Below, piece by piece: positions 1,146-61,634 of a stretch of DNA of 64,000 bases (position 1 is its first letter; each line of letters begins with the position of its first letter). The position numbers and the translations under genes were made by a program. The stretch lies in IMG/VR virus record IMGVR_UViG_3300026484_000007, positions 186,001 to 250,000 of that record, one strand, 5' to 3'. Under the pieces are notes generated by a model. That model was not told the DNA's origin and made no database searches. It worked only from the letters and a program-made list of their open reading frames with translations.

Positions 1146-2160
1146 ACTTCGATCCTTTTTTAATTTTTATTATTTTTTTGATTTTTCTTGATTTTAAATC
1201 TTTTTTATGAAGTCTTGCCGCTAAATCTATATGAGCTAAATCAGAAGAGGATAAAACTAAACCATTCTCTTTACCGATTTTTACTGATTTAGCGGAAAGT
1301 AATTTATTCTGAATCTCTTTAGTGATCTTTTTTAGATCACTAAAATCAACTCCAGTTTTTTCTTTAATTATTTTCCATTCAGCAAATTTACGATAGTTTC
1401 GTAATCGTTTTAAAGCTTTAAGATGATCGTATTTATTTAATATAACCGCTTCATAAGCTAAAACCATAATACTATTATGATTTCCTATCATTGTATAATT
1501 TCCATCATTTTCTATATAAAAAACTCCATTTCTAAATTCTTTTTTAGCGTATTCATGAAATTCCATGATTTCATGATATTTAGAAATACTTCTATCTAAC
1601 TCAATCCATAAACGATGTTCGAACGGACCACCCATATGTTTATCTTGATATAAAAAGAAACGATCGAAAAAAGATACTTCAGGAATAACGATGAATAATA
1701 AATGGATTCGGTATTCTTTTTCTTTCGATGTTTTTGAATTTTCTCCGATATTTTCTTCAATAAGCGAAAATTCATAAAAATAAAAAGCTGGTGCTTTTAT
1801 AATTTCAGAAGCTAATTTTTTATAATCCGATGGTAAAACGCCTGGAAATTGTTTATTTATTTTTTCAAAATAATTTAATATATCTTTTTTAGATTCAAGA
1901 ATCGGTACGATCGGAATATTGTATTCTTTGAGCTTATCGAAAGAATCTTTATAATTTTTTTTATAAATTTCGATTCCTTCATTTAAAAGTTTTTTACTTT
2001 CTTTATCTATAAAATCTATGGCTTTTTTAATTTCTTCTCTAAGATTCTTCGTATAAATTAATGGATTAAAAATATTTTCAGTTAATAAAATTTTATTTTT
2101 GGATGCGTTATTTATATAATTTATATAATTCGTATAATTGACTAATGAAGATTTTCTCAT
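1117..2160 (-). CDS. hypothetical protein, possible virion protein
   Basis: 347-aa ORF with AAGGA RBS; N-terminal LLTE/LLNE candidate processing sites. Confidence 0.7.
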   Translation of the reverse strand: MRKSSLVNYTNYINYINNASKNKILLTENIFNPLIYTKNLREEIKKAIDFIDKESKKLLNEGIEIYKKNYKDSFDKLKEYNIPIVPILESKKDILNYFEKINKQFPGVLPSDYKKLASEIIKAPAFYFYEFSLIEENIGENSKTSKEKEYRIHLLFIVIPEVSFFDRFFLYQDKHMGGPFEHRLWIELDRSISKYHEIMEFHEYAKKEFRNGVFYIENDGNYTMIGNHNSIMVLAYEAVILNKYDHLKALKRLRNYRKFAEWKIIKEKTGVDFSDLKKITKEIQNKLLSAKSVKIGKENGLVLSSSDLAHIDLAARLHKKDLKSRKIKKIIKIKKGSKYDSRFNIRK

Positions 2161-2233
2161 TATTATTCCTTTTTTGGCTTAGTTTTTTAATTATGATTCG
2201 ACGAGTCAACGAAGTCTAAAGTTTTAAACGCAA

Positions 2234-2361
2234 AAAACTTTGATTTTCTACGTAGCATCTTTTTTAGATACAAGCGATATAAAAGCAGTTCTAAAATTTT
2301 TAGAACTCGTATATATCTTTAGATATCTATAGAAGCGCAACGTTTTGGAAACTCAAGTTTT
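2234..2361. repeat. ~130-bp intergenic repeat, full copy
   Basis: AAAACTTTGA...TCAAGTTTT ends, central GTTCTAAAA/TTTTAGAAC inverted repeat. Confidence 0.9.
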
Positions 2362-2378
2362 CAATAAAAATTATATCG

Positions 2379-2441
2379 AAAACTTTGATTTTCTACGTAG
2401 CATCTTTTTTAGATCTTCCGCGATATATACGAGTTCTAAAA
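2379..2441. repeat. half copy of ~130-bp repeat (arm A)
   Basis: near-identical to 2234-2296. Confidence 0.85.
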
Positions 2442-2495
2442 CAATTATGAAAAACTAAAAATTAAGAATTTTTTTAATAAAATAAGGAGATTAAA

Positions 2496-3107
2496 ATGCA
2501 GAAAATAAAAAATGATATTGATTTAATATCAGATGAAATAAAAAATGAACTGAAACTGATCGAATCAAATCTTTATGCTTTATTCGATTCAAATGATCAT
2601 TCTGACGAACTTTATCAAAAAATTTTAAACATGCAAGACGATATACTTAATAATCCATTTTTCATCGAGCATGGTTTAAGTCAAGAATTTAATAAATTAT
2701 TTAAAATTCTTATTTTTTTAAGTTCTAAAATTGACACAAATGATAAAGAATTCAAGAAAAAAATGTTTGATATCTTAAGCAAATTCAAAGAGAATAAAGA
2801 AAAAAGCGTTGAACTTTCTAAGTATTATATTGAATATTTAAATGAACTTTTAAAATTAATTGAAGATTTAAAAAAAGAAAAAGAAAAAGAAAAGGCAAAT
2901 AAAGATCCAATAAATTACAAAGGAATAAATAAATTTTTATTTATTGTAAAAAATTTATTAATTTATTTATTTAATTCTAAACCAGTACAAGTTCTTTTTA
3001 GTGTATCTTTGGTAGTAGCATTTTTGTATGGTTTAAAAACATTTGACGTAAATTTCTATCAAGAATTTATTGAGTTATTTAAAACTATTCATAAAATATT
3101 TTTATAA
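2496..3107 (+). CDS. hypothetical coiled-coil protein with C-terminal hydrophobic helix
   Basis: AAGGAG RBS; VLFSVSLVVAFLYGL segment. Confidence 0.7.
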   Translation: MQKIKNDIDLISDEIKNELKLIESNLYALFDSNDHSDELYQKILNMQDDILNNPFFIEHGLSQEFNKLFKILIFLSSKIDTNDKEFKKKMFDILSKFKENKEKSVELSKYYIEYLNELLKLIEDLKKEKEKEKANKDPINYKGINKFLFIVKNLLIYLFNSKPVQVLFSVSLVVAFLYGLKTFDVNFYQEFIELFKTIHKIFL

Positions 3108-3119
3108 AAAGGAGTTCTA

Positions 3120-3971
3120 ATGAAAATTATAAAAAATTTATTGAAAAAAATAGAAGACTTTATAAGTGATCTAAAAAAGATCATTTATTATCAGGAAGAA
3201 AAAATTGAGGGGGATAAAGAAGCTAATTCGGGGGGATCGATTAATTCTACAGAAAAAGCAAAAAATGGCGCGGAAGAAATAATTAATTTAGAAAAAGAAG
3301 CGATAGAAATCGATGAGGAAATTCTAAAAACATTCGAAGAACAAGAAAAAACAATCAATCAATTTCAAAAAAATTATTCGGAAATTGAACCTCTAGATTT
3401 AGATAATATAGACTTTTCAAAATTCACCATTATTATCTCCGATGATCATTTAGGTTCTTTGAAATCAATTATTACTGATATAAAAATGATTCTAAAAAAT
3501 GAAACTCAATTTAGTTCGATTAATTCAGAAACCTTAATCAGAATTAAAAAAATAAAAGAAAAATTTGAGAGTCTATATGGATCTTTTTATGATATAAATC
3601 TTATAACTTTTAATACAGATTATGCTCCATATATCATAGAAAAAACATTAGAAAAATATCCAGAGCTTAAACCTAATATAGCGATACTAGATATTATCTA
3701 TGGAGGATTCTTAATTAAAGATAAGAAAAATTATATTTTAGATGGGGTTGACATTGCGGAAAAGATCGTAGAAAGATCACCAAATTGTTTAATTGATTTT
3801 TATACTGGATGCGACCTAAATAAAAATAGTGCAGAAGCAAATAAAATAAATAATTTATCTAAAAAAACTCAAGTACATATTACGGATAAAGACATTGATG
3901 ATAACCATCGTCTAAAACCATTAATTCGGTTATTCGAATCTTTTTTAGATACAACCGAAAAGGAGGAATAA
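3120..3971 (+). CDS. response-regulator receiver-domain protein without obvious output domain
   Basis: IIISDD (beta1 acidic pair), IAILDII (phospho-acceptor Asp), LDGVDIAEKI, FYTG, TDK; adjacent to a histidine kinase. Confidence 0.7.
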   Translation: MKIIKNLLKKIEDFISDLKKIIYYQEEKIEGDKEANSGGSINSTEKAKNGAEEIINLEKEAIEIDEEILKTFEEQEKTINQFQKNYSEIEPLDLDNIDFSKFTIIISDDHLGSLKSIITDIKMILKNETQFSSINSETLIRIKKIKEKFESLYGSFYDINLITFNTDYAPYIIEKTLEKYPELKPNIAILDIIYGGFLIKDKKNYILDGVDIAEKIVERSPNCLIDFYTGCDLNKNSAEANKINNLSKKTQVHITDKDIDDNHRLKPLIRLFESFLDTTEKEE

Positions 3972-3972
3972 A

Positions 3973-5517
3973 ATGAGTTCTTTCAATTCTTCTAATAAAT
4001 CTTCTAATACAAATGAAACAACCGAAACAATCGAAACGATTGAAAATTTTTCAAAAATATCAAAAATACCAAATCTTTCTCAATTAGATGATGAATCCGA
4101 AGCTCAAATAACTTCAGATTCAATATTTTCTAAAAATGGAAAAATTATTTTATTCTCTGGAATCTTTATTATATTTTTAATTAATATATTATTATTTTTT
4201 TATTTTAAATACGAAATAAATAGAGATTTAAAATATTTAAATCTCTATTCTGATATAAAGATCCAAAAAAGATACGAAGGTGATTACTTTTTTAAATTAG
4301 ATGAAAATCGTTTTATTAAAAATGAAAATAATTCAATTAAATTAAATAAAATTATAGGAATAAATATTTTCAAAGATGGATCTTTTAAAGATCCTTTTTA
4401 TTGCATAAATAAAAAGATTTATGTTTCAAAAGAATTAAATTTTAAACATAATTCGATTAAAATTTTATATCCATTGAATGATAAAATTTATTTTTTATTA
4501 CTTAATAATTTATTATTATTTTTATTCGTAATAATTTTATTGAGATTAAATAAATACTATAAAATGATCCATGAAAAAGAAACTGCTATTATAAAAACTA
4601 TAAAATTCAAGCATCAAAGTAATAATCTCGAAGCAAAGATTATTCAAGATATTGCTGAAAATATTCATCATGAATTAAAAACTCCTATAATTTCTTTAAA
4701 AAATATAATTAGAGAATACCAATTTGCTTTAGATATAATTCAGCAACTTGCGCAAAAAAAAGGTAATCGTTTAATTGATAGAATTTTTTATTTGAATAAA
4801 AATCCTACTTCATGTTGGTCATGTCAATTTCATGACATTGAAAATCCAGCATGTAGGTATTATTCAAAAAACGAAATTAATTTATCTAAAAAAATTATAG
4901 AATTAAATGAATTAGCTGATGTTGCGTTAAAAAATATTTTTGGTACCATAAAAATTACTAAGAACTTAAAATCATTTAAAGAACAAGTTGGTGAAATCAA
5001 TGTTTATGACGTGATTTATCGTTCGATAAGTATCTATCATATGGTGCAAAAATATAAATTCAAATACCAAATCGATCCAAAATTAAAAGAATGTTATCTT
5101 AATGGATTAAATCCAGAAGTTCTTACTAATATTTTATTAAATCATATTAAAAATTCATTAGAAGCAAACGGAACGATAATAACTTTTAAATACATTGAAT
5201 ACATAGAAAACATAGAAAATGATCCTGAAAAGATCTCTTCCAATAAATCAACTAAGCCTTCTAAACCTTTAATTCATATTCAGATAATTGATAATGGAAA
5301 TGGAATTCCAAAAGATAAACAGCGAAAGATTTATCAACTTGAATTTAGTACCAAAAGTGTGACTAAATTAAGAGGCGTTGGTCTTTATATTTCGAGAGAA
5401 TTATTACGATATTATGGAGGAGATGAGAAGTTAAAATTTAGTAGCCATTTAGGTACTATTTTTGATTTATATATTCCTATTAAATATTGTGAAAAAAAAT
5501 CAAAGGAAAATCAATGA
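3973..5517 (+). CDS. membrane sensor histidine kinase
   Basis: two TM helices; H-box HHELKTP, N-box NILLNHIKNS, G1 DNGNGIP, F-box FSTK, G2 GVGLYISR. Confidence 0.92.
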   Translation: MSSFNSSNKSSNTNETTETIETIENFSKISKIPNLSQLDDESEAQITSDSIFSKNGKIILFSGIFIIFLINILLFFYFKYEINRDLKYLNLYSDIKIQKRYEGDYFFKLDENRFIKNENNSIKLNKIIGINIFKDGSFKDPFYCINKKIYVSKELNFKHNSIKILYPLNDKIYFLLLNNLLLFLFVIILLRLNKYYKMIHEKETAIIKTIKFKHQSNNLEAKIIQDIAENIHHELKTPIISLKNIIREYQFALDIIQQLAQKKGNRLIDRIFYLNKNPTSCWSCQFHDIENPACRYYSKNEINLSKKIIELNELADVALKNIFGTIKITKNLKSFKEQVGEINVYDVIYRSISIYHMVQKYKFKYQIDPKLKECYLNGLNPEVLTNILLNHIKNSLEANGTIITFKYIEYIENIENDPEKISSNKSTKPSKPLIHIQIIDNGNGIPKDKQRKIYQLEFSTKSVTKLRGVGLYISRELLRYYGGDEKLKFSSHLGTIFDLYIPIKYCEKKSKENQ

Positions 5518-5687
5518 ATGCAATAATGTCAGGAGCAGCTCCGGTTGCTCCGATGGCTTCATCGCGGACGATACAATCGATTAAACCGATGAAAGATCTT
5601 GGAAATAAATTAAATAAAGCTTACCAAGCTCATAAAGCGCACAAAGCCCACAAAGCTCGAAAAAACTATAAAAATAGAAAAAATTAA
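5514..5687 (+). CDS. small basic protein (57 aa, AHK repeats)
   Basis: ATGA overlap with kinase stop, AAGGA RBS; MNAIMSGAAPVAP...AHKAHKAHKARKNYKNRKN. Confidence 0.6.
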   Translation: MNAIMSGAAPVAPMASSRTIQSIKPMKDLGNKLNKAYQAHKAHKAHKARKNYKNRKN

Positions 5688-5724
5688 ATATAAAATTAAA
5701 TATAAAATTAAATAAGGATTTTTT

Positions 5725-6450
5725 ATGGCTGTACAAACTTGGCAAAACTGGAATAATCTTATTGATTGGATAAAGTTACAGATGGGTGCTCCAGTCTTAA
5801 AATTAGAATTGACGGACGATGACTTAATTGATCTTATAAAGAATCATACTCTTCCAGAATTCTCTAGATACTTACCTTTATATCGATATTATTTTATGAC
5901 TGAAGAAGAAAATTGTATTCAATTCGAGCCTACTAAACTTTATCAAATTAAGAATTTTCCTTTTAAAATTTTAAAAATAGATAGTATTATAGCTAAACCA
6001 AATATTTTAGATCTTAATCAGAACACGAGCGTTGCTTTATATTCCGGAGATATAACGAATCTTCTTGGAAGTAATTATATGAATCAAGCGAAAACAGTAG
6101 TTCTTGCCGATGATACTTGGACATTTATAGCTCCAGATAAAATTGAATTAATTAAATCAAATAACAGTGTTTGGATTTATGATGATTTCATTGCTAAACT
6201 AGCATGTATACATGAAGATCCATCAACGATCGATCCTGATCTTTATCCATTTTTAAGAGATTTAGCTTTAGCAGATACAATGATAATCATTGGTAGAATT
6301 AGGACTAAATTTAGACAATTTAATACTCCAGCTGGAGCAGTTGAAATGCCTTCTCAAGAATTGATTCAAGAAGGACAGCAATTAAAACAACAGACTCTTG
6401 AAAAATTAGATAGATTGCCTCCAGATCATTATTTATATTTTCTAGATTAA
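5725..6450 (+). CDS. neck protein, T4 gp13-like
   Basis: LIDWIKLQMGAPVLKLELTDDDL resembles gp13-family N-terminus; C-terminal GRIRTKF...ELIQEG. Confidence 0.75.
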   Translation: MAVQTWQNWNNLIDWIKLQMGAPVLKLELTDDDLIDLIKNHTLPEFSRYLPLYRYYFMTEEENCIQFEPTKLYQIKNFPFKILKIDSIIAKPNILDLNQNTSVALYSGDITNLLGSNYMNQAKTVVLADDTWTFIAPDKIELIKSNNSVWIYDDFIAKLACIHEDPSTIDPDLYPFLRDLALADTMIIIGRIRTKFRQFNTPAGAVEMPSQELIQEGQQLKQQTLEKLDRLPPDHYLYFLD

Positions 6451-6535
6451 AAATCTAACTCATGATCTTTTTAAGATCATTAATCATACACGAATAAACA
6501 AACGATTAAAATTAATTGTTTTTAAGGAGAACTTT

Positions 6536-7291
6536 ATGAAAGCTACATTTTCAGAATTAATTTATGAAAGTTATCAATATTTTACAGAATCCACAAAAGG
6601 ATCTAAAAAAGATCACAAGAAAAAAACTACGAAAAAAAGTGGATCTAAACAATCCAAGCAACCTAAATATAGCGAGGATGGGAAATCTGTAGAAGATCAT
6701 TACAGTAAACAGAATACCGTTTTAGGAAATGCCGCAGAATGGGCTGATCCTACTAAAGTTGTTGCTTCTGGTGTTAGAGGTTATGAACTTGGTAAAAAAG
6801 TTGGACATCCAGTAGCTGGGACACTTTTAGGACCAGAAGGAGCAATCGGAGCAGCAAGTAATACTTACGACGATGTTAATCTTGGATCTGTTTATAATTC
6901 TAATGAATTACCAAGAAAAATTCTCGGTTATGGATTAGGAGGTGCTGCAGTTGGTACTGGTTTAGCGTTAATGGGTCATCCTATTCAAGATTTAGATGAT
7001 GCAATTAATCAAGCGAATCCAGTAGATGATCAATCTATTTTTGAAAAAGGATATAATTCCGTTAAAGACTTTTTTGCGCAAGATGCATTACAGAATGATC
7101 CTAAAGATGCTGCAAATATAGTTGGTAAAAGTGCTTTACTTGGAGGTGCTTTAGGTGTAGGTGCTGGAGCAACAATCCCAGCAATGAGATACGCTGGAGG
7201 AAAATTATTCTCTGGAGATCCATATAAAGCAAGACAATTAGCAGGAAATGATGTAAATAATAGATTTTATCCATACGTTGAAAGAGTATAA
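6536..7291 (+). CDS. glycine-zipper protein with processing-type leader
   Basis: MKATFSELIYE|S; GYGLGGAAVGTG and GGALGVGAG zippers. Confidence 0.75.
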   Translation: MKATFSELIYESYQYFTESTKGSKKDHKKKTTKKSGSKQSKQPKYSEDGKSVEDHYSKQNTVLGNAAEWADPTKVVASGVRGYELGKKVGHPVAGTLLGPEGAIGAASNTYDDVNLGSVYNSNELPRKILGYGLGGAAVGTGLALMGHPIQDLDDAINQANPVDDQSIFEKGYNSVKDFFAQDALQNDPKDAANIVGKSALLGGALGVGAGATIPAMRYAGGKLFSGDPYKARQLAGNDVNNRFYPYVERV

Positions 7292-7329
7292 AAAATATAA
7301 AAAAATATAAAAAAAATATAAAAATTATA

Positions 7330-7373
7330 AAAGTGATCCTTCCTGGATCACTTTTTTTGTCGTTAGAAAAAAA
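7330..7373 (+). terminator. intrinsic terminator with conserved tail
   Basis: AAAGTGATCC-TTCCT-GGATCACTTT hairpin + TTTTGTCGTTAGAAAAAA. Confidence 0.85.
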
Positions 7374-7396
7374 CGAAGATCAAAAAGGAAAAAATT

Positions 7397-7705
7397 ATGA
7401 ATACTTTATCATTTCTCAATAAAAGATCTAAAAGAGATCTTTTAAAAATTGAAGAAAATTTTAATAAAGCTGCAGATTCAGAATTTAAATCTGGGATTAT
7501 TGGTGGGGTTCTTGGAGCTGGAGCAGGATATTTCGTTGGAGATCAATTATCGCCTTGGTATGATCATAGCGAGTACGGAGCTAGTAATAATATTATTACT
7601 AATAATTTACATAAAGTTAGTACATTTGGCGGAATGGGAGTAGGAGCCGCAGCAGGAATCGCTGGCGGGACAAAGTTATCAAATGTTTTAAATAAGAATA
7701 AATAA
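7397..7705 (+). CDS. small glycine-zipper protein
   Basis: leader ...LLKIEE|N; GIIGGVLGAGAG and GGMGVGAAAGIAGG. Confidence 0.75.
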   Translation: MNTLSFLNKRSKRDLLKIEENFNKAADSEFKSGIIGGVLGAGAGYFVGDQLSPWYDHSEYGASNNIITNNLHKVSTFGGMGVGAAAGIAGGTKLSNVLNKNK

Positions 7706-7739
7706 AAATAAATAAGAATTAATTTTAAAAGGAGACACT

Positions 7740-8021
7740 ATGAATTTTTTAAATCAGTATGGAATTAAAAATTTAGAATTAATGGAATCTGTTATCGTTT
7801 TATTTGAAAATGAAATTAAAAATCAAATTAAAATTTCTCATCCTGGAGCATTTACAGATTACTGCAAAAAACAAGGATTTTCTGGAGTAACTTGCGATTG
7901 CATATGTAAAGCTATGGCTAGTAATGATAAAACTTTACACAAACGAGCAAATTTTGCTTACAATTTTGGATTTAAGAAAAAAGGACAAACTTGTAGCTGT
8001 ATGGAAAAACAAGGGAAATAA
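7740..8021 (+). CDS. small Cys-rich protein, possible virion protein
   Basis: AAGGAG RBS; LME|S leader; HPGAF...KRANFA. Confidence 0.7.
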   Translation: MNFLNQYGIKNLELMESVIVLFENEIKNQIKISHPGAFTDYCKKQGFSGVTCDCICKAMASNDKTLHKRANFAYNFGFKKKGQTCSCMEKQGK

Positions 8022-8030
8022 GGATCAATT

Positions 8031-9152
8031 ATGCGACAAATAAAATATTTAGAGATCTTAAATGAAGCATCTCGAGTCGACAAAGAACTTAATAAATTAA
8101 GAAAAAGCAATCCAGAAAAAGCTAGAAATATGATGTCTAAGCTTACAGTGCATGCAAATAAATCTATTTTAAATAATAATATTTACACTAAAAAAGATGA
8201 AGGCAAAAAATTTATGGTTGACAAGCCTTTGAATTATAATAAAATACATTTTGCAGCTAACGATAAATTCAATGAAAGTTTTTTTAATGACTTTAAAAAA
8301 AGTTACCGAGAACGATTAAAAGCAATTCCAGAAAACCCTACAATTTCTTCTATTCCAAAAGAAGAATTTAATCAACGATTCGCTGATAGACGTTTTATAA
8401 TGAATAATAATAAAGTAAATAAATTATACGATATGGGATATCTTAATAAAGATGCTTATGATAAAGTCCTGAAAGTAAAAAATTCTGAAAATTTAAAAAA
8501 TCATGTTCCAGAAACATACGATAATCCTAATAAATTTTCTCAAAAAGAAGAATTGAATTATCCAGATAAAAATAATAAAGGGTATACGATCTCTTATCAA
8601 GGAAAAAATTCTTTTGATTTCTTTATGAATAAAAATAAAGAATTTTATAGCAATGTTCCTTTATTTAATAAAGGAGAGAGACAAGCCGTAATTCATCCTC
8701 CTGGGACTATTTATACAAGTGTATTTGATAATAAAGATTCGTATAAAGAGGAGTTAAGATCTTTAAAAGATTCTGATGGAGGAAGTTGGTATGCAATGCG
8801 AACTGGAGAATATGGCGATGAGCCTATTCAAATTAAAGGAAAAATAAAAGGCAAACATATCATTACGCCACCAAACGCAGAAGCTCCTACCGAAGGGTTA
8901 TTGGATAGAGATACAATTCAGAATTTAATCAATAAAAATAAAATAAAAGTAAAAGATTATAAAAATCCTAATGTTTATGATTATAATCAATATGATGATT
9001 CTTATCCTGAACACGTTAACCCTAAATATAATGTAATACGGGCTAAATTAGATCCTGATAGCTTTAATGATATTTCCAACGAAAATGGAACTTACAGATA
9101 CATTGTTTCGCCAAATTATACTTATACAAAACATTTCAAAGGAAAAGGATAA
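8031..9152 (+). CDS. hypothetical virion protein; weakly ADP-ribosyltransferase-like C-terminal half
   Basis: leader ILNE|A; spacing of YQG...IYTS...WYA...TEG is loosely ART-like. Confidence 0.55.
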   Translation: MRQIKYLEILNEASRVDKELNKLRKSNPEKARNMMSKLTVHANKSILNNNIYTKKDEGKKFMVDKPLNYNKIHFAANDKFNESFFNDFKKSYRERLKAIPENPTISSIPKEEFNQRFADRRFIMNNNKVNKLYDMGYLNKDAYDKVLKVKNSENLKNHVPETYDNPNKFSQKEELNYPDKNNKGYTISYQGKNSFDFFMNKNKEFYSNVPLFNKGERQAVIHPPGTIYTSVFDNKDSYKEELRSLKDSDGGSWYAMRTGEYGDEPIQIKGKIKGKHIITPPNAEAPTEGLLDRDTIQNLINKNKIKVKDYKNPNVYDYNQYDDSYPEHVNPKYNVIRAKLDPDSFNDISNENGTYRYIVSPNYTYTKHFKGKG

Positions 9153-9154
9153 TT

Positions 9155-9757: not shown

Positions 9758-9791
9758 AAATAAATAAAAATAAATAAAAAAAGGATAAACA

Positions 9792-10553: not shown

Positions 10554-10583
10554 ATAAAAATAAAAAAAATTAAAGGATAATCT

Positions 10584-11147: not shown

Positions 11148-11212
11148 ACGAAGAAGTAAAATAAAAAAATAAAAAAAATAAAAATATATTTTATATATAA
11201 TAGGAGTTAAAT

Positions 11213-12169: not shown

Positions 12170-12205
12170 TCCTCTTTGGATCACTTTTTTTGTCGTTAGA
12201 AAAAA
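12165..12205 (+). terminator. intrinsic terminator with conserved tail
   Basis: GTGATCC-TCTTT-GGATCAC + TTTTTTTGTCGTTAGAAAAAA. Confidence 0.85.
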
Positions 12206-12224
12206 TCCATAGAAAAACTTTTGA

Positions 12225-52284: not shown

Positions 52285-52296
52285 AAGGAGGATTTA

Positions 52297-53173: not shown

Positions 53174-53261
53174 TATAATAAATAATATAATAAATAATAT
53201 AATAAATAATATAATAAATAATATAATAAATAATATAATAAATAATATAATAAATAATATA
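53166..53261. repeat. pure-AT tandem repeat (ATAAATAATATA)x8
   Basis: eight perfect 12-mers; ACTGACCTT x~2.7 follows at 53293-53317. Confidence 0.95.
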
Positions 53262-53345
53262 ATACATATATGCGAACAGACGCAGTCAATTAACTGACCT
53301 TACTGACCTTACTGACTACGTCAAAACGATTAAAAGGAGATTTAA

Positions 53346-54374: not shown

Positions 54375-54682
54375 CGCCTACTATTATAAGAAAAGGATCT
54401 AAAAAAGATTCAGAAAAGAAAAAATTTTCTTTTCTATTTGAATATACGCCAGATGGCGAAATGTATCTTACAAAGATCACTCGACCTGTAAGCTATTTTA
54501 TTATGCTTTTTATTTTTATATTTTTATTAATTCTCAATAGTTTCAATGTAATTCATACTGACGAATTATATATTGAAACATTAAAACAAGTTCTGCTTTT
54601 AATGACAGGATTTTATTTTACTGCGCGCACGCTCGAAAAAATTCAAAAAGGATCTAAAAAAGATCCTTTGGATGAGAAATAA
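54371..54682 (+). CDS. holin-like membrane protein
   Basis: TRP + TM helix, second helix ending GFYFTARTLEK, typical of small phage holins. Confidence 0.6.
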   Translation: MTPTIIRKGSKKDSEKKKFSFLFEYTPDGEMYLTKITRPVSYFIMLFIFIFLLILNSFNVIHTDELYIETLKQVLLLMTGFYFTARTLEKIQKGSKKDPLDEK

Positions 54683-54803
54683 AAAATAATTTTTTAAATT
54701 AATTTTTTAAAACGATTTTCCCTAAAAGGATCCTAAAAGGATCCTTTTAGGATTTTTGTCGTTAAACGAAAACCAAATTAATTTAATATTTTAAGGAGAC
54801 CTA

Positions 54804-57800
54804 ATGGGTGCTTTAGGTAATGAATATTTATATAAAAAATTGGTCGAAGAACAACAAGCGCAAGAAATGCGTAATAAAATGGCTTCGAAAAATAGTTTTT
54901 TTAATAAAAATATAATCGGAGGAACTCAGCGTATGACTGGTAGTCCATTGATTGGAGCTCTTGCTCCTACAATGGCTGCTGGAATGGGTAAAACGATGGT
55001 GACTGCTCACACAACTGACGCAGCTCTTCAAATGGCAGGATCTATTCCTTATTTATTTTTAAAAGCTGGTCAAGGAGCAAATTATTTAAATAAATATAAA
55101 CAATTAGATCTTAAATTTCAAAGCGGTTTGATGGATAATTATAGTGGCTTTAGTCATACGATGCATAATGCTATGAAAGTTCAAACTGCTTCTGCGGGAG
55201 CTAGTGCGGCTGCCGCTGCGCTTGGTCATACTGGAGCAGCTCAATGGATAGCTGCTCATAACCCAATGCTTATGGCTTTTCATGGATTAGGACCAAGTAG
55301 TGGGCTGGGATCTTTAACAGGAGCAATTGGAAAAGGAACCGCAGGACTTTTAGGTTTAAAAGGTGGTGCTGCGACAGCTCTTGGAACTCTTGGATCTTTC
55401 GCTCCTATGGCGTTAGCCCTTGGTGGGTTAATGTATGGTGCTCATAAATTTAATAAAATGGGTGGAAGCGATACAACCATCCAAAATAAAAAAATTAGAA
55501 ACGAGACTCCAAAAGTCAATGGTATTCAAAAGTTGATCTCCGAAGGATCATATAAGACACATGCGAATACTATTCAAATGCTTCAGGCTCAAAATTTATT
55601 AGATCCTTTTCAGACTTTACAATTAACTATCTTAAATGATATTAATCTTAATACCACAGCTAATAAATTAAGTTATATTGAAAAACACACGAAATCAACA
55701 GATAATGCTAGAGTAAGTAATGAATTAGCTAATAGATTTTATCAAGATGAATTTCGATCGAGCTCGTTGAGTGGTTCAAAAAATTTAAATAAAAATATTT
55801 GGTATAATGTAAACCAAGGGATCTCTTTAGGATCATTTAGATTATTTGCAAACTTAATGGGTCCTTTATCTCGAGTTATGTTTGGTCAACATGTTGGAGA
55901 AATTAATTCTCAAATCGATAGCATGCTGACTTCAGACAGCAGAAATTCTTTTCATAATGCTTTAACGAAAAGCGCAAATAAATTAAACATTCCTCATAAT
56001 TTACTTTCATCAGTTCACGCGAGCGCAAATGATTTTCTTAAGTATGAATCTTTTGAAGATCAATTATTAGGTTTAACTGCAAACATTCATGAAATATCAA
56101 GAACAAGTGCGTTAGCCCTTTTAGATATACGAACTGGTATGGGTTATAATCAAAGCACTTCTCTTGGTGATGGAGCAAAAACATCTGCTTTTAGTATCAT
56201 CGGAGACACCAAAGATTATCTAAAAAGAACAGCAGGAGTAAAATCATTTGAAGATAAATCTTTTGCTCAAAAATATTTTGGAAGCTTTTGGGGAACCTTA
56301 CTTGAAGGTGGATTAAGTTTTGCTCACGGATTAAGCACAAATGTATTAAAAGAAACAGCAAAACTCGGTGGTAAGCAATTAGATAAAGGATTAGTAAAAT
56401 TATTTGGAGCAGGATTCTCTGACGATCTTAATTACAAAGAAGCGGTTAAACAGAAAAAGATAAATAACTTACTTAAGTTAGCTGCTAAAAAAGGCGACAT
56501 CAACGAAGCATTTAATTCAATGACTAATTCTGATTATGATTTAAGTCAGTCGCTTCATATAGCGACCATCTTACATAAAGAAAGAAAAAAAGAACATTTC
56601 ACTGGAAATTATTCTGACGACATTGAAAAAGCTTTAAATGGTTTAGATCTTGAAACAGAGATAAATGAAAGTAATATCACAAAAGAACACGTTAAAAACG
56701 CTGAAAAAGTTCTAGATAAAATTAATAATACAATCAGAAAACTTAACGATGAAAAGAAAAGAATTACTAATCCAGATAGATTAGAAGAAATTAATAAAAA
56801 GATTAAATCATTCAGAAGAATAAAAACAATTGTAGAATCTCGATATTCTAAATTGAATCTTTTATGGATCGCTAAAAAGAATGGTGGAATTGAAAAAGCA
56901 ATCCAATCTGGTAAATTAAATTCTGATAAAGATGCTTTTTTAGCTTATAAAGAATTTGATCCTACTCAATCCGGAGGAAGCAATAGTTACGTTCAGAATT
57001 TATTAAATCCATTTTTAGATCCATTCAGACAAATGCGATCTTCTTTTATAAATTATAAAGAAAATCTTGCTCGAAAATTAAGAAATTCATTCAATATTTA
57101 TTCTCAAAAAGATATTGAAAAATTATACGACGACGCTAAAAGTAAACTTAGAAAAGTCGATTATGAAAAATCTGGTAGGGAATTTCTTGGTAAAAAATTC
57201 CCAGATATGATGATCCAAATTCTAAACGAACTTAAAACACAGAGTTCGTATTTAAAAGATCTCTTACGTTGTAATGGTTGTAGCGTTAAGCAAGTAAAAG
57301 GATTAATTTCAGGAAAATGGCGAGGTCAGTTTGGTGATATAATGACTGACTCAGAATACGATAGAAGACTTTCAACAGAAGCTTTATCCCAAGTGGAAGG
57401 ACAATTAGAAACCGGTAAAAGCAAAAGATTAATTGGAGGTCTTACTAAACACATAGGAATTAATCTTTTAAAATTGATGACTCTTGGATCAATCAAAGCG
57501 GAAGAATTCAATACTGGATCATCCGTTATGAAAAAATTTAGAATGTATACAAGATTAAATGACGATCAGCTTCAAAGAATTCAGGAAAAAGAAAATAAAG
57601 AAAAAGAATTCGAAAAAGAATTAAAAGAAAAAGTAGAATCTGAGAAAAAAAGTTCTAAAACTTTAGAAGTAATTGAAACGACTGTTAAAAAATGGTTTTC
57701 TTTTGAAAAAGAATCTAAAAAAGATTCAGAGAAGAAAGAAGAATCAAAGAAAAAATGGTTGGAAAATTTATTAGTTGGAGGTTTAGGTTTATCTCTTGGA

Positions 57801-59315
57801 GGTTTATTATATAGTGGGTTCGGTTATCTTGCAGAACATTTAGATCATATGATAGATAGCGCATATGAATGGATGCAAGATAACTCTTCAACATTAAAAA
57901 GTGTAGCTGCTACACTTGGTGGAATAGGAGCTGCATACGGTATTAAAAAAGCGAAAGACGCCGTTTTCGGAAAGAAACAGAAACCTAAAACAGATACTTC
58001 TGAAAAACCTAAAAACGATAAATCCAAAAATAAAAAAACTAATAAAACTAATAAACCTAAAAACAATAAACCTAATAAAATTAAGAAAATCGTAAAAAAT
58101 ACGAAACGATCATTAAAAGGTTTCTGGGGAATTTTCCTTGAAAAGCTTAAGAATGTTTGGGATCGAGCGCTTGATTTATTCAAGAAAAAGAATCCAGGCA
58201 AAGTCGATAAAAAATCTTATAATTTTATCAAAACTATTAAAAATTTTATATCTAAGGCTCCAGAAGCTTTCGTAAAATTATTTAAGAGTTTTAGATCTGT
58301 AAGCGGATTTTTAAAAGCTACTAAAATAGTAAGAGCTTTCTTTTCAATGTTAGCAGTTGGTGGAGCTGTTGTTTTAGGTTCCGCTGGAATTGGATCAGCA
58401 ATGATCGCAATATTCACTTCATTTATTATTTTCTTAGTAACTGATTTCTTAATCGATATTGTAATTGATTTAATTAATTCTACAGGTGAAGCTGAAAACT
58501 ACGAAGCTCAAATTGTTTTAGAATCATTGAATAATATTAAAGATTTATCAAATGATGTAGAATACTATAAATTTTTATCTTCGCTTGATTCATTAGGTAA
58601 TATTGATGCGGCGAACACGTTAGTAAAACATTATACACGGACTGGAGATCTTAAACATAATTTATCAGCACTGATTGGAGGCGTTGAAGATAATTATTTT
58701 GAGAACGATGGAATAATATTTAACTTCAAAGAAAAAAATAAAAATGGCGCTAAAATAAGTAAAGATTTTATAAAAAATACATTATACAATCATCTTCGAT
58801 TTAATGATACTAGTAATGTTATTAGAGAGATGAATGCATTTGAATTATATGCAAAAGATAAAGATGATATAAAAAATATGCAAGCAATTGCTAACTTTAA
58901 AGTAATAGTAGAAATGCTTGATGAAAAGAAAAAACAAGAAATCTTTAGTTCTCCAGAAGTCTTTATGAGAAACTTCAATGACTTCCTTAAACAGCCAGAT
59001 AACTGGATCAACTCTCACGGTTTAACTGGTAGAGTAAAAAAGAAAAATATTGAATTCACTAATAAATTTGGAGAAGATTTTAATAAAGCTATTTATTATG
59101 AAAACGAAATTACTCCGAAATATAAAGCTGGTGCATCAGCAATATCGGAAGTTGATTTCAAAAAACCATTAGAAGAAGCAGTACAACAAATTACATTAAG
59201 TATATCAGAAGCAGCATCAATAATCACTTCAGCAATTAATAATCAGACGGTTAGTCTTTCAGGAACTTTAGCAGCAACAAAAGTTGAAAGTATTTCGTCT
59301 ATATCCGAAAAATAA
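54804..59315 (+). CDS. tape-measure-like large virion protein
   Basis: 1503 aa, helical, Gly/Ala-rich and TM segments, located among baseplate genes. Confidence 0.6.
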   Translation: MGALGNEYLYKKLVEEQQAQEMRNKMASKNSFFNKNIIGGTQRMTGSPLIGALAPTMAAGMGKTMVTAHTTDAALQMAGSIPYLFLKAGQGANYLNKYKQLDLKFQSGLMDNYSGFSHTMHNAMKVQTASAGASAAAAALGHTGAAQWIAAHNPMLMAFHGLGPSSGLGSLTGAIGKGTAGLLGLKGGAATALGTLGSFAPMALALGGLMYGAHKFNKMGGSDTTIQNKKIRNETPKVNGIQKLISEGSYKTHANTIQMLQAQNLLDPFQTLQLTILNDINLNTTANKLSYIEKHTKSTDNARVSNELANRFYQDEFRSSSLSGSKNLNKNIWYNVNQGISLGSFRLFANLMGPLSRVMFGQHVGEINSQIDSMLTSDSRNSFHNALTKSANKLNIPHNLLSSVHASANDFLKYESFEDQLLGLTANIHEISRTSALALLDIRTGMGYNQSTSLGDGAKTSAFSIIGDTKDYLKRTAGVKSFEDKSFAQKYFGSFWGTLLEGGLSFAHGLSTNVLKETAKLGGKQLDKGLVKLFGAGFSDDLNYKEAVKQKKINNLLKLAAKKGDINEAFNSMTNSDYDLSQSLHIATILHKERKKEHFTGNYSDDIEKALNGLDLETEINESNITKEHVKNAEKVLDKINNTIRKLNDEKKRITNPDRLEEINKKIKSFRRIKTIVESRYSKLNLLWIAKKNGGIEKAIQSGKLNSDKDAFLAYKEFDPTQSGGSNSYVQNLLNPFLDPFRQMRSSFINYKENLARKLRNSFNIYSQKDIEKLYDDAKSKLRKVDYEKSGREFLGKKFPDMMIQILNELKTQSSYLKDLLRCNGCSVKQVKGLISGKWRGQFGDIMTDSEYDRRLSTEALSQVEGQLETGKSKRLIGGLTKHIGINLLKLMTLGSIKAEEFNTGSSVMKKFRMYTRLNDDQLQRIQEKENKEKEFEKELKEKVESEKKSSKTLEVIETTVKKWFSFEKESKKDSEKKEESKKKWLENLLVGGLGLSLGGLLYSGFGYLAEHLDHMIDSAYEWMQDNSSTLKSVAATLGGIGAAYGIKKAKDAVFGKKQKPKTDTSEKPKNDKSKNKKTNKTNKPKNNKPNKIKKIVKNTKRSLKGFWGIFLEKLKNVWDRALDLFKKKNPGKVDKKSYNFIKTIKNFISKAPEAFVKLFKSFRSVSGFLKATKIVRAFFSMLAVGGAVVLGSAGIGSAMIAIFTSFIIFLVTDFLIDIVIDLINSTGEAENYEAQIVLESLNNIKDLSNDVEYYKFLSSLDSLGNIDAANTLVKHYTRTGDLKHNLSALIGGVEDNYFENDGIIFNFKEKNKNGAKISKDFIKNTLYNHLRFNDTSNVIREMNAFELYAKDKDDIKNMQAIANFKVIVEMLDEKKKQEIFSSPEVFMRNFNDFLKQPDNWINSHGLTGRVKKKNIEFTNKFGEDFNKAIYYENEITPKYKAGASAISEVDFKKPLEEAVQQITLSISEAASIITSAINNQTVSLSGTLAATKVESISSISEK

Positions 59316-59331
59316 TTTTTAAGGAGCTTTT

Positions 59332-60783
59332 ATGGGTAAAAATAACACCGGTAACTCTAGTCCACAAATTCCAGGAATGGAAATTGAAGAACTTGATATA
59401 AAAACTTTAGCAAATTCCGGATCAGGTATTAAAGCAAATAAAATTCATTTAGTTGTTTTGGGTCAATTACCTGGATTCAATTCCGAAATTGATCCAAATT
59501 TTGCTTTAGAAAAATTAAATTTAAGAAACATTCCATTGATTGATTTTATTCCAGTTTCTTATAGTATACCTTTAATTAATAAAATGATGTCAGGAGCTTC
59601 AGAAGGATTATCTAAATTTAGCGCGATGTTAGCTGAAGGTGAATTTGGAACTATGGGATTATATTTAAAAAATGGATTAAGTTCAAGTTATAACTCTTTT
59701 AAATCTCTTCTTTCATCGGCAGCAAATTCTGTCAATCAAAAAGGATTCGTAGGCGCTTCGACATCTGCTCTTGCTGATGGAGTTCAGAATTTGACAAAGT
59801 TAGCAGATTCTACTTCATTGTATAACTATGAAGCTTCTCCAGAAAACGAATGTAATTTTTTATTTAATTTACTTTTAATGAGATACGTGAATTTGAATTG
59901 GGGGGTAGACGCCAAATCGCATATTTCTTCTTACCTTAAAGAAGATAAAAAAAATAAACAAGATGAAGCTAAAATAAAACAAGGATCGGAAGAATACTTA
60001 GGAGTAAGATTAATTGCTGCAAATGATGCTATGTATAATGAATCAATTAGTAATTCATTTGGACAAAATGAAGCTTTAAATGTCTTATCAAATAACCCGT
60101 TAGTTAACGCATTTTCTGGAGCGGCGACGTCTCTTTTCAATAAAGGAGCAAACGCAATTACAAACGCTACAAAAATTAATGCTCTGAATACAGTACAGAA
60201 TCTCCCTAAACTAAGTTATGGAGATGCATTGAAAGTCTTTGAAGGATCTAGTACTGGTAATATAATTACTCAAATTGCTCAAAGTAAATTTCTTGGAATG
60301 AATATAGCTTTACCAAAAGCTTTTAATAGTTCAAATTTTTCGGATAATTTTAGTATAACAGTGAAGTTATCTTCTCCGAGTGGACATCCAATTGATATTC
60401 AAAATTATATTATAAATCCTTTAAAAATTTTCTTATCTATGGCAGCTCCAATTACGCAAAATCTTGAAACATATTATTTACCATTATTATGGAAAGTACA
60501 AGGTTATGGTATTCATAATGATTTAGTAGCTTATATAAATAATATAACTATAATGAAAGGCGGAATGGAAAATTCAGTCAATGATTATCTTCAACCAACA
60601 ATGATTGAAGTAAGATTAACTTTAAGTACGATTTCTGAAACAATGGCTGCTGTAGCTGCTCCAGATGTGCTTGTTTCAGATACAAACGAACGAAACGCGA
60701 TTGGTATGACTACTCCTTTAAGATCAGCTGAATCTATGGACCAATCCAAATATAAAAGAGAAAAATACACTGTGAAATTATAA
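59332..60783 (+). CDS. putative baseplate/tail-tube-initiator-type structural protein
   Basis: follows tape-measure-like gene; C-terminal YINNITIMKG...PTMIEVRLTL tube-like strands. Confidence 0.5.
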   Translation: MGKNNTGNSSPQIPGMEIEELDIKTLANSGSGIKANKIHLVVLGQLPGFNSEIDPNFALEKLNLRNIPLIDFIPVSYSIPLINKMMSGASEGLSKFSAMLAEGEFGTMGLYLKNGLSSSYNSFKSLLSSAANSVNQKGFVGASTSALADGVQNLTKLADSTSLYNYEASPENECNFLFNLLLMRYVNLNWGVDAKSHISSYLKEDKKNKQDEAKIKQGSEEYLGVRLIAANDAMYNESISNSFGQNEALNVLSNNPLVNAFSGAATSLFNKGANAITNATKINALNTVQNLPKLSYGDALKVFEGSSTGNIITQIAQSKFLGMNIALPKAFNSSNFSDNFSITVKLSSPSGHPIDIQNYIINPLKIFLSMAAPITQNLETYYLPLLWKVQGYGIHNDLVAYINNITIMKGGMENSVNDYLQPTMIEVRLTLSTISETMAAVAAPDVLVSDTNERNAIGMTTPLRSAESMDQSKYKREKYTVKL

Positions 60784-60825
60784 TAAAAATACAATAAATT
60801 ATAAAATTTTTTACAAAGGATTCAA

Positions 60826-60999
60826 ATGAAAAAAACAGAAAATGATAAAAATGATAAAAAAATTTTAGAAATAAAAGATCCTTTATCTAAAAAAGATTTA
60901 GAAATAGAAACAATCGTTTGCGATGAATTCTTAGAAGAAGGATCTTTTATAGAAATCGATTTAGACGTTATCGATTTCGTAGAAAAACTTAAAAAATAA
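60826..60999 (+). CDS. small acidic protein (57 aa)
   Basis: AAAGGA RBS; MKKTENDKNDKK...VEKLKK. Confidence 0.6.
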   Translation: MKKTENDKNDKKILEIKDPLSKKDLEIETIVCDEFLEEGSFIEIDLDVIDFVEKLKK

Positions 61000-61055
61000 A
61001 AAAGGATCTTTTTTAGATCCTTTTTAAAAATTAAAAATATAAAGGGAGATTAATA

Positions 61056-61634
61056 ATGTTAGATGATATTCAAAAACCACTTACAACGCTTATAAATATT
61101 TTTAATATTAATTTTATAGTAGGAATTATTTTATTTTCAATCGTTTTTACTATTGGAATGATTTTATTCAAAGATCAAATTAAATATTTATTTTATTCAT
61201 TTATGGATTTTATGAGATCTTTTATAGATCGCAAGTCTACTCAAAAATCTATAAAAGATCAACAGAAGCAATCTTCTTCGTCTTCTCCGCGCGCTCAGCT
61301 TTCTATACAAGAAGCGCAAGAAGTTAGACGATTATTAAACGATATCATTAAAGAAAAATTTAATTTTTATTTAATCAATGAATTATTACCTATGTACTAT
61401 GGTAATAAAAAACCAGATAAAAATGATATTAATGAATTGCAAGAAAGATTTTTCACTGATGTATCGTTATTGATCACAAAGGATCTAAAAAAGATCTTTT
61501 TAAAATATTATACTACAGAAGGTATAAAAATATACATTAATGAACAATTTTTGTATTACGTGAATAAAATTGATAAAGCTTTCTATACTGATCAGACTTC
61601 GATAGTTTCCGACGATTTATATAAATCGATATAA
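61056..61634 (+). CDS. membrane-anchored hypothetical protein
   Basis: N-terminal TM helix. Confidence 0.7.
   Translation: MLDDIQKPLTTLINIFNINFIVGIILFSIVFTIGMILFKDQIKYLFYSFMDFMRSFIDRKSTQKSIKDQQKQSSSSSPRAQLSIQEAQEVRRLLNDIIKEKFNFYLINELLPMYYGNKKPDKNDINELQERFFTDVSLLITKDLKKIFLKYYTTEGIKIYINEQFLYYVNKIDKAFYTDQTSIVSDDLYKSI

Follow-up and report, generated by a model that had tools for sequence, protein, structure and literature searches.

A 273-kb jumbo phage from a hydrothermal vent carries 250–450 copies of a single 15–21-bp palindrome (GATCT, five A/T, AGATC), most of which are written into protein-coding sequence by point substitution. Related phages have similar palindromes in only a few dozen copies, mostly between genes in two of the three genomes scanned whole, and a regulatory binding site therefore seems to have spread over a whole genome. 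We interpret the motif, with moderate confidence and from sequence alone, as the binding site of a dimeric DNA-binding protein, ancestrally a promoter-proximal operator, that has been amplified about tenfold in this lineage alone.

Abundance, spacing and coding context

The window analysed here is a 64,000-nucleotide stretch (positions 186,001 to 250,000 of IMG/VR record IMGVR_UViG_3300026484_000007) of the 272,602-bp genome. An initial annotation of the window had listed 33 positions of an iterated GATC-N7-GATC motif, and this observation is confirmed and is stronger than first described. All 33 are exact GATC-N7-GATC matches, and the window contains 59 such matches against 0.87 expected from dinucleotide-preserving shuffles, in which the maximum was 4. 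Only 15 of the 59 carry the exact centres TAAAAAA or TTTTTTA, so the description of these as exact copies of a consensus was too generous, although the family is real. The histogram of GATC–GATC spacings has one peak, at 11, with 59 in the window and 0–9 at every other spacing up to 80; in the whole genome there are 248 at this spacing, with 0–25 at every other spacing up to 120, and about 9 are expected from GATC frequency. The strongly conserved core is ATCT-N5-AGAT, with 367 copies in the genome against 25 expected, and the outer G and C are optional and are the most variable positions. The locations of selected copies in the window are shown in Table 1.

Table 1. Positions of the palindrome and related features in the 64,000-nucleotide window. 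"Box" denotes TTGTCGTTAG.
Coordinates	Feature	Context
1..64000	Whole window	59 GATC-N7-GATC copies (45 in coding sequence, 14 outside it) and 88 copies of the core ATCT-N5-AGAT
1324..1338	Coding copy	Inside minus-strand gene 1117-2160, frame 0, peptide DLKKI
2256..2270	Core-only variant (CATCT, five T, AGATA)	At a fixed place in the ~130-150-bp inverted-repeat intergenic element; other copies start at 279, 2401, 22317 and 40244
3168..3182	Coding copy	Inside gene 3120-3971, frame 0, peptide DLKKI
6464..6478	Intergenic copy	13 nt after the stop of gene 5725-6450 and 57 nt before the next start
7335..7349	Terminator-type copy	Stem extends 6 bp beyond the motif, with a T-run and then the box
9587..9601	Coding copy	Inside gene 9155-9757 (DLKKI); orthologues have EQNKI or DWNKI of the same length, so it arose by substitution
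10609..10634	Two overlapping copies sharing a central GATC (three GATCs in 11-bp phase)	Inside gene 10584-11147, which holds 5 motif-family sites (4 strict copies plus 1 core-only site)
12168..12182	Terminator-type copy	With a T-run and the box, upstream of the large terminase gene
12419..12433	Copy at a gene start	Overlaps the ribosome-binding site and start codon of the large terminase gene (12425-14290)
16803..16823	Long 21-bp form (AGTGATCT, five A/T, AGATCACT)	Just after the stop of gene 15214-16800
17328..17459	Two coding copies (17328 and 17445)	Inside gene 16965-18308, both encoding DPEKI; orthologues differ or have gaps there
19506..19520	Coding copy	Inside the primase-helicase gene 18417-21590 (DLVKI; orthologues have GEVKI or GDVNI)
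21580..21594	Hairpin copy	Straddles the stop of the primase-helicase gene; stem extends 5 bp
25169..25183	Terminator-type copy	Followed by the box
34460..34480	Long 21-bp palindrome	Inside gene 34376-35728 (DLLKI)
35727..35741	Terminator-type copy	At the stop of gene 34376-35728, followed by the box
40066..40086	Long form	Stem extended 8 bp, a T-run and the box
40668..41444	Seven strict copies (ten counting core-only sites)	Inside gene 40344-41999; in orthologue alignments 9 of the 10 are substitutions or sit in variable stretches
47419..47433	Terminator-type long form	At the stop of gene 46227-47420
49279..49293	Hairpin copy	Followed by the box
54729..54743	Intergenic hairpin copy of the GGATCC type	Stem extends 8 bp
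61005..61019	Intergenic hairpin copy	5 nt after a stop and 36 nt before the next start
61482..61496	Coding copy	Inside gene 61056-61634, frame 0, peptide DLKKI

About three quarters of the copies lie inside genes. Genome-wide, 184 of the 248 are in coding sequence, with 87, 60 and 37 in frames 0, 1 and 2, and all three frames are also represented in the window, the initial annotation having noted different reading frames; its observations that some copies are terminator-like and that variants lie within the ~130-bp intergenic repeat are likewise confirmed. The peak at 11 survives the codon-usage control that had been specified in advance: shuffling synonymous codons within genes leaves 85 of 248 copies (46 of which are untouched intergenic copies), and shuffling codon order leaves 56. 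The motif uses rare codons, such that ATC constitutes 91% of Ile codons inside it and 17% outside, and AAG 46% of Lys codons inside it and 11% outside. Alignments with orthologues show same-length substitutions at most sites and not insertions, unlike what is expected of in-frame mobile palindromic elements (RPE or REP-like).

An alternative explanation is that the pattern is a by-product of protein sequence or codon usage, with repeated peptides such as DLKKI or GSFKD, or a mobile 15-bp in-frame insert, generating the DNA word. A few genes do carry runs of similar peptides, for example xSFLDL five times (eight motif-family sites in all) in the gene at genome coordinates 37329–38480. However, the same DNA word occurs in all three frames and on both strands, encoding unrelated peptides, and it is enriched outside genes; together with the shuffling controls and the orthologue alignments, we consider this explanation to be refuted.

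Symmetry of the site and the hairpin copies

The motif forms a two-fold symmetric 21-bp logo, symmetric out to A at -3 and T at +17, in which each half-site is A-n-n-G-A-T-C-T-(T) and the half-sites are 11 bp apart, about one helical turn, across an A/T centre. The base identities are invariant rather than merely complementary, and the inner bases are almost never substituted. The centre is almost always a run of T followed by a run of A, which is the case for 97 of 108 all-A/T centres against 36% in the background. The palindrome shows no orientation bias, with 30 copies forward and 25 reverse.

Copies between genes either extend into longer hairpins with T-runs or lie in clusters in larger intergenic regions, including a perfect 4-copy array with a 28-bp period, and there are 18 triplets in 11-bp phase. 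The criteria for intrinsic terminators are satisfied only by the non-coding subset, comprising 28 long forms in the genome and most of the 14 non-coding copies in the window, 10 of which have a stem 4–8 bp longer and/or the box. This raises the possibility that the copies act as hairpins in RNA or single-stranded DNA, as terminators, processing or stability signals in transcripts, or as priming or loading signals on the lagging-strand template about once per Okazaki-fragment length. Non-coding copies do extend into 8–10-bp stems with T-runs (-9.5 to -10.5 kcal/mol) right after stop codons, the density of about one per 0.6–1.1 kb matches bacterial Okazaki fragment size, and a palindrome reads the same on both strands. 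The coding copies, however, have stems of only 4–5 bp (-1.9 to -3.2 kcal/mol), most of the 184 having a stem extension of 0–1 bp and folding at about -3 kcal/mol, and the short form folds at only -2.8 to -3.2 kcal/mol. Coding copies show at most a weak excess of complementary bases in the two flanking positions (73 observed against 52 expected at position 1, 71 against 59 at position 2, and none beyond) and none in the centre, whereas non-coding copies show a much stronger one (50 against 23, and 48 against 27), and wobble pairs are not favoured. The stem sequence is fixed rather than co-varying, other terminators in the same cassette use unrelated GC-rich stems, and the T-run-then-A-run centre has no rationale as a loop. 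We therefore regard a hairpin role for the copies in general as unlikely.

Palindromes in related phages and a search for cognate enzymes

Five related jumbo-phage records have 0–6 copies each per 130–281 kb, and there are none in 13 kb of relatives with 66–71% identical terminase. Each of the three relatives scanned whole (G001, G003 and G004) has its own low-copy palindrome: TTGCTC-N5-GAGCAA has 57 copies in G001, half of them intergenic; AACTAT-N2-ATAGTT has 37 copies in G003, 33 of them intergenic; and ATCTTTAAAGAT has 21 exact copies in G004, nearly all intergenic and including a 6-copy array. One uses the same half-site with a centre one base shorter. The nearest relative examined has two copies 37 bp apart, just after a hairpin, T-run and shared promoter-like box.

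The initial annotation had suggested sites for a dimeric genome-organising, packaging or methylation-sensing protein, or a mutational drive resembling HIP1 or uptake sequences, and this interpretation is partly supported. A site for a dimeric protein acting on DNA fits well with the symmetric logo, the invariant bases and the clustered, operator-like palindromes of the same build in related phages, although a role in packaging or genome organisation would be conjecture on present evidence. Methylation sensing is not supported, and nor is a Dam/SeqA-type arrangement in which GATC is the functional unit, as 204 of the 367 core sites lack one or both GATCs. No Dam-type or other DNA methyltransferase domain was found in the phage, either by six-frame searches (PF02086, PF01555 and PF05869 gave no hit) or by Pfam scans of the 279 ORFs of 55 aa or more out of 285 called, a result that does not extend to host enzymes. 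Support for an uptake-sequence-like origin was not obtained: relatives lack the motif, and the 21-bp form gave only 10 scattered single hits across 185,579 species genomes, none repeated within a genome, although the host may not be represented in that collection.

A mutational or conversion drive, as proposed for HIP1, is not excluded, but nothing points to an enzyme for it. In this view an enzyme recognising near-cognate sites (a nickase, glycosylase or short-patch repair system) would convert them to the cognate palindrome, and copies would accumulate without any benefit from being bound. Consistent with this, density is highest where constraint is lowest (2.46 per kb outside genes against 0.75 per kb inside), about 130–150 one-off copies exist beyond the chance level, the spread is recent and confined to one lineage, and sites are clustered. 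Against it, no methyltransferase, Vsr-type or MutH/Sau3AI-type domain was found in the 279 scanned ORFs or the six-frame searches, a 21-bp bipartite target with a patterned centre is far more complex than any known short-patch repair target such as that of Vsr/Dcm, and relatives keep same-build palindromes as clustered intergenic sites that look functional. We consider such a drive the less likely explanation, although a repair or conversion bias driven by the binding protein itself would leave the same static pattern.

We also considered whether the motif is an address for DNA modification, as the preferred target of the phage's 7-deazaguanine transglycosylase, perhaps guided by a lineage-specific double helix-turn-helix (HTH) protein encoded next to it, or of a host GATC methylase, with copies multiplied to raise the density of modified sites. 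The phage encodes GTP cyclohydrolase I, QueD, two QueC-like proteins, radical-SAM proteins and a DpdA-like protein with a DSGGFQ motif; each half-site core holds one G on each strand; and the gene next to the DpdA-like gene encodes a two-HTH protein that is absent from relatives. However, motif-less relatives have the same DpdA-like gene at 42–44% identity, published phage DpdA targets are two or three bases long (GA, GGC; PMC10484667, PMC7544227), the outer G is the least conserved position, and no adenine or cytosine methylase was found in the phage. Moreover, a modification protects only where it sits, so multiplying a 15-bp address gains little, and we view this possibility as doubtful.

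A putative dimer-binding site and its closest parallels

The best interpretation is that the motif is the recognition site of a sequence-specific protein that binds double-stranded DNA as a symmetric dimer. In this clade such palindromes would normally be low-copy sites between genes, mostly clustered, with each lineage having its own sequence, and in this lineage alone the site would have multiplied and spread through coding sequence in all frames, at the cost of rare codons and changed amino acids; copies between genes would have been built into terminator hairpin stems, where a palindrome costs nothing. The statistics, the symmetry, the invariant bases, the origin by substitution, the absence from relatives and the analogous sites in relatives are established by the analysis, but that a protein binds, that selection and not a repair bias maintains the copies, and what binding achieves are all inferred. 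No binding protein has been identified; the only Pfam-detectable HTH proteins are weak hits, and two of them have no homologue in relatives, including the relative that shares the half-site. Purifying selection on the copies is not shown, as a strain comparison found 0 differences in motif copies where 1.8 were expected, which is not significant. The clustering of sites (coefficient of variation 1.27) argues against a need for regular coverage. We suggest that the purpose may be genome-wide occupancy by one phage protein, either blocking transcription as stoperators do, or marking or compacting the phage's own DNA.

Several iterated or operator-like sites offer comparisons. HIP1, the highly iterated palindrome GCGATCGC of cyanobacteria, is also a short palindrome with a GATC core, is present about once per kb and in genes in all frames far above expectation, and is of unresolved function; however, it is a contiguous 8-mer in cellular genomes and is tied to a cognate methyltransferase, with HIP1 having been linked to CGATCG methylation, whereas the motif here is a bipartite 15–21-bp phage site with a patterned A/T centre, for which no phage methyltransferase was found, and it is absent from relatives. 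The 17-bp dyad repeat of Cluster O mycobacteriophages (TGTTCGG-N3-CCGAACA) similarly has invariant arms, a variable centre that is mostly TTT or AAA, and more than 30 copies spread through the genome in no fixed orientation and with unknown function (PMC4351075), but in Corndog the 34 copies lie mostly between genes or at gene ends, whereas here there are 248–452 copies with 74–79% of them inside coding sequence. Stoperators of Cluster A mycobacteriophages are also many copies of one protein-binding site distributed across a phage genome, and they let a single repressor block transcription elongation everywhere, but they are asymmetric and are bound by a monomer (PMC9283540). Stoperators are about 13 bp long, oriented with transcription, and number roughly 20–36 per genome; the motif here has ten times more copies, lacks orientation bias and has no known repressor. 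Finally, classical HTH dimer operators (CRP-type TGTGA-N6-TCACA, and phage 434 and P22 operators) share the two-fold symmetry, half-site centres 11 bp apart and an A/T-rich centre that is not contacted, and the long form here (AGTGATCT ... AGATCACT) even resembles the CRP consensus half-site TGTGATCT. The GTGA blocks are, however, 11 bases apart and not 6, such operators occur in a few copies at promoters and not in hundreds inside genes, and no CRP-family protein was detected in the Pfam scans.

A more far-reaching possibility, which we consider unlikely but cannot exclude, is that one lineage of a (possibly plasmid-prophage) jumbo phage has rewritten several hundred positions of its own genes so that a single dimeric protein can occupy the genome every 0.6–1 kb. 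That would be a virus-encoded whole-genome address code, and it could serve global silencing of a genome transcribed by the phage's own RNA polymerases, self/non-self marking, or targeted base modification through the lineage-specific HTH protein encoded next to the DpdA-like gene.

Iterated palindromes such as HIP1 and the Cluster O repeat have gone unexplained for decades, in part because no contrast between relatives with and without the motif was available. Here the contrast exists, as relatives keep a same-build palindrome as a low-copy site, intergenic for the most part in two of the three scanned whole, and one lineage has pushed it into hundreds of coding positions, which makes it directly testable what binds the site and whether the spread is driven by selection or by a repair bias. 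It also shows how strongly a DNA-level signal can bend protein sequences in a virus, and peptides such as DLKKI or GSFKD in this phage should be annotated with the caution that they reflect a nucleotide signal and not a protein motif.

Frequency, structure and genomic distribution of the motif

The window is bases 186,001-250,000 of a 272,602-bp virus record that is rated 97% complete and was assembled from a hydrothermal-vent metagenome. The genome is about 27% G+C and encodes a T4-type large terminase, a portal protein, a family-B DNA polymerase, a primase-helicase, ribonucleotide reductase, type II topoisomerase subunits and split multisubunit RNA polymerase genes, and it is therefore a jumbo phage. 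Genes start after Shine-Dalgarno-like sequences. Counter-defence and RNA-repair genes are also present, including Tad2-like (anti-Thoeris), Cas_csx3, NADAR, the HAD domain of 'Swiss Army Knife' RNA repair proteins, T4-type RNA ligase, a kinase-phosphatase, and NAMPT/NAPRTase. Rfam and tRNA scans of the window found nothing.

The initial annotation described a highly iterated GATC-N7-GATC motif, and this observation holds; all 33 of the coordinates that it listed are matches. GATC-N7-GATC occurs 59 times in the window, against 0.87 expected, and 248 times in the genome, spread over nearly every 10-kb bin. The histogram of GATC-to-GATC distances has a single spike, at 11. Shuffling synonymous codons within each gene leaves 85 copies, 46 of which are untouched intergenic ones, and shuffling codon order leaves 56; the excess is therefore not explained by GATC frequency, codon usage or amino-acid composition. 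Across the whole window the four-base palindromes are strongly skewed, with GGCC at 0.2, CTAG at 0.39 and GTAC at 0.40 of expectation, whereas GATC and GCGC are both at 2.5. This suggests a host rich in restriction systems, with GATC not counter-selected.

To define the motif, we performed an unbiased scan of all words paired with their reverse complement, which puts ATCT-N5-AGAT first, with 367 copies against 25 expected. With one half held perfect, the inner A, T and C of the other half are almost never replaced, whereas the outer G or C is replaced in about a quarter of cases, with no preference for complementary or wobble partners. GATC as such is thus not the unit. The symmetrised logo extends to A at -3 and T at +17, giving a 21-bp dyad, and among all-A/T centres 97 of 108 are a run of T followed by a run of A, a pattern for which the genome background is 36%. 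Counting core-only sites gives 452 sites, and another 130-150 GATCs have a one-off partner at exactly 11 bp.

Genome-wide, 184 strict copies lie wholly inside ORFs (frames 87, 60 and 37), 46 lie between genes and 18 straddle gene ends; in the window, the split is 45 to 14. The density is 0.75 per kb inside genes and 2.46 per kb outside, although we note that genes were called simply as ORFs with ATG starts and 50 aa or more, so that a few coding and non-coding assignments will be wrong. Even spacing is rejected, as the sites are over-dispersed and clustered (coefficient of variation 1.27). Inside genes the word encodes DLKKI, DPKKI, GSFKDP, RSLKDL, EILKRS and many other peptides, which together with the shuffling controls excludes a protein repeat. 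It forces rare codons, with ATC being 91% of Ile codons inside the motif against 17% outside, and AAG 46% of Lys codons against 11%. Alignment with orthologues from related phages shows peptides of the same length with different residues, for example DLKKI opposite EQNKI or DWNKI, and NLKKI opposite NLSKV. The copies therefore arose by point substitution, mostly in the less conserved stretches, and the motif is not a mobile insert.

Non-coding copies and intergenic elements

Non-coding copies are of two kinds. In the first, the palindrome extends outward, as in AGTGATCT ... AGATCACT or AAAGGATCT ... AGATCCTTT; it sits within tens of bases after a stop codon and is followed by a T-run, and often a conserved box, TTGTCGTTAGAAAAAA, comes next. 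These copies fold at about -10 kcal/mol, whereas the bare 15-mer folds at about -3. Flank complementarity is strong in non-coding copies (50 observed against 23 expected), but in coding copies it is only weakly above expectation in the first two flank positions (73 against 52, and 71 against 59) and is at expectation beyond that. Other terminators in the same cassette use unrelated GC-rich stems, so the hairpin role does not require this sequence; the motif has been placed where a palindrome costs nothing. The cassette of terminator hairpin, T-run and box has 34 copies in the genome, lying 24-400 nt upstream of gene starts, and is possibly the promoter of one of the phage RNA polymerases.

The second kind is a core-only variant (CATCT, five T, AGATA) at a fixed place in an intergenic element of about 130-150 bp. 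This element has about 27 copies in the genome, occurs in either orientation, and is built as a long imperfect inverted repeat around a perfect central hairpin (AGCAGTTCTAAAA / TTTTAGAACTGCT), with no Rfam match. There are also motif clusters in large intergenic regions, and one perfect four-copy array. A separate gene-poor stretch of the window shows a rise in G+C and holds three copies of a 63-nt unit carrying two GC-rich hairpins (GGGGAGCA..TGCTCCCC and GGGGGAC..GTCCCCC), together with a 186-nt repeat at 94% identity; no tRNA or Rfam hit was found there.

We considered whether the motif might be linked to an actin-like (ALP_N / MreB-like_C) gene. The arrangement of this locus resembles a ParM-type segregation locus with its centromere and hints at a plasmid-prophage lifestyle, but the iterons that flank its operon differ from the motif, and we saw no motif cluster beside it in the site lists.

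Locations of features in the phage genome and in related phage G004. L171, L172, L175 and L176 are stretches of the phage record, with positions counted within each stretch.
Feature	Location	Strand
Genes of the 7-deazaguanine (preQ0-type) pathway, outside the window	L176:7713-8501; L176:10787-11380; L171:8904-10289; L172:16927-18162	minus
Cassette of terminator hairpin, T-run and TTGTCGTTAGAAAAAA	window 7357-7372, 12190-12205, 25193-25208, 35757-35772, 40098-40113, 49308-49323 and others	
Inverted-repeat intergenic element of about 130-150 bp	window 245-325, 2222-2364, 12212-12354, 22215-22313, 35780-35938, 40153-40301, 49353-49451	
Gene-poor stretch with repeated GC-rich hairpins	window 29563-30621	
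Actin-like gene, its operon flanked on both sides by 11-bp A/T-rich tandem repeats	L175:12974-13882 (gene); L175:11797-11837 and L175:15053-15087 (repeats)	minus (gene)
Four perfect tandem copies of a 28-bp unit, each holding one motif copy extended to a 9-bp stem, between two minus-strand genes of unknown function	L171:14539-14650 (genome 89057-89168)	
Homing endonuclease of 515 aa (PHROG 3339, E 9e-127) next to the DpdA-like gene, with 41-44% identical copies in G004	L172:18170-19714	minus
Protein of 124 aa with an N-terminal helix-turn-helix	genome 158938-159312	
Protein of 239 aa with two helix-turn-helix motifs	genome 110095-110814	
Six-copy array of the G004 dyad motif, 23-bp period	G004 49665-49791	

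Dyad motifs in related phages

Comparison with relatives is the most informative result. Eight loci from relatives with 42-49% identical RNA polymerase beta subunit have 0-1 copies per 23 kb, five whole records of related jumbo phages have 6, 1, 0, 0 and 0 copies in 130-281 kb, and contigs whose terminase is 66-71% identical have none in 13 kb; no relatives of intermediate distance were found in the collections. Scans of the viral collection with the 15-mer and with the 21-bp form found only single chance hits, the metagenome scan returned only this contig plus single hits, and the scan of species genomes returned 10 scattered hits. An uptake-sequence imprint from a known genome is therefore not supported.

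Yet each of the three related phages scanned whole (G001, G003 and G004) has its own iterated dyad motif of similar build. G001 has TTGCTC-N5-GAGCAA in 57 copies, about half of them between genes and often as head-to-tail pairs just upstream of start codons. G003 has AACTAT-N2-ATAGTT in 37 copies, 33 of them intergenic, in pairs and triplets. G004 has ATCTTTAAAGAT in 21 exact copies, nearly all intergenic, including the six-copy array and a cluster upstream of the terminase gene; the G004 half-site is the same as in the phage studied here, with a centre one base shorter. The nearest relative examined (20.2 kb) has only three core matches, of which two lie 37 bp apart, immediately after a hairpin, a T-run and a TTATCGTTAGAAAAAA box, a variant of the box seen here. 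An 80-aa protein encoded beside this putative operator pair has no homologue in the phage studied here. The site therefore predates this lineage as a putative promoter-proximal element, and what is new is its spread into coding sequence.

We also compared strains by placing contigs of four vent runs on window 6201-12200, which showed a strain about 1.2% different. There were 125 differences, and none of the 40 examined fell in a motif copy, where 1.8 were expected; this comparison has no power, and it does not separate selection from a mutational drive as the cause of the spread.

Candidate binding proteins and interpretation of the motif

The proteome has few detectable DNA-binding domains. 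The candidates are the 124-aa and 239-aa helix-turn-helix proteins and a third, weaker one at genome 107997-109211. The first two have no homologue in five relatives, which fits a lineage-specific trait, but fits poorly with a half-site shared with G004. No Dam-type or other DNA methylase domain was found in the profile searches and Pfam scans, and no MutH/Sau3AI, DpnII, BglII, SeqA or methylase family appeared among the families listed by the whole-proteome Pfam scans.

An unlikely alternative is that the motif is connected with modification of the phage DNA. The phage does carry a 7-deazaguanine pathway, with GTP cyclohydrolase I, QueD, two QueC-like proteins, a Q_salvage domain, five radical-SAM proteins and a DpdA-like protein (PHROG 887, DSGGFQ motif) that the Pfam TGT model missed, and its DNA probably carries a modified guanine. 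However, motif-less relatives share the DpdA-like gene, and published DpdA targets are two or three bases long. The modification may explain why a GATC-rich genome is tolerated, but it does not explain the spacing.

Two-fold symmetry, invariant rather than co-varying bases, 11-bp half-site spacing, an A/T centre without ApT steps, phased triplets (18 in the genome) and arrays are the standard signature of a site read by a symmetric protein dimer in two successive major grooves, and the clustered intergenic sites in relatives fit an operator. We therefore read the motif as an operator-type binding site that has been amplified genome-wide. The initial annotation had proposed a site for a dimeric genome-organising, packaging or methylation-sensing protein, or a mutational drive resembling HIP1 or uptake sequences, and this interpretation is partly supported: a dimeric site fits the motif, whereas the methylation-sensing and uptake-sequence readings are not supported. 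The excess, the spacing, the symmetry and the origin by substitution are established by the analysis, whereas binding by a protein is inferred from sequence alone, as is any purpose of the amplification.

The feature is real, very strong and lineage-specific. Iterated dyad motifs are known from phages, as in the Cluster O repeat (PMC4351075) and the stoperators, and from cyanobacteria (HIP1), and we regard the motif described here as an extreme form of these. What its amplification achieves is a matter of inference, but the readings that we find most plausible are that it may serve the global blocking of transcription, in the manner of stoperators (PMC9283540), or the marking or compaction of the phage's own DNA.
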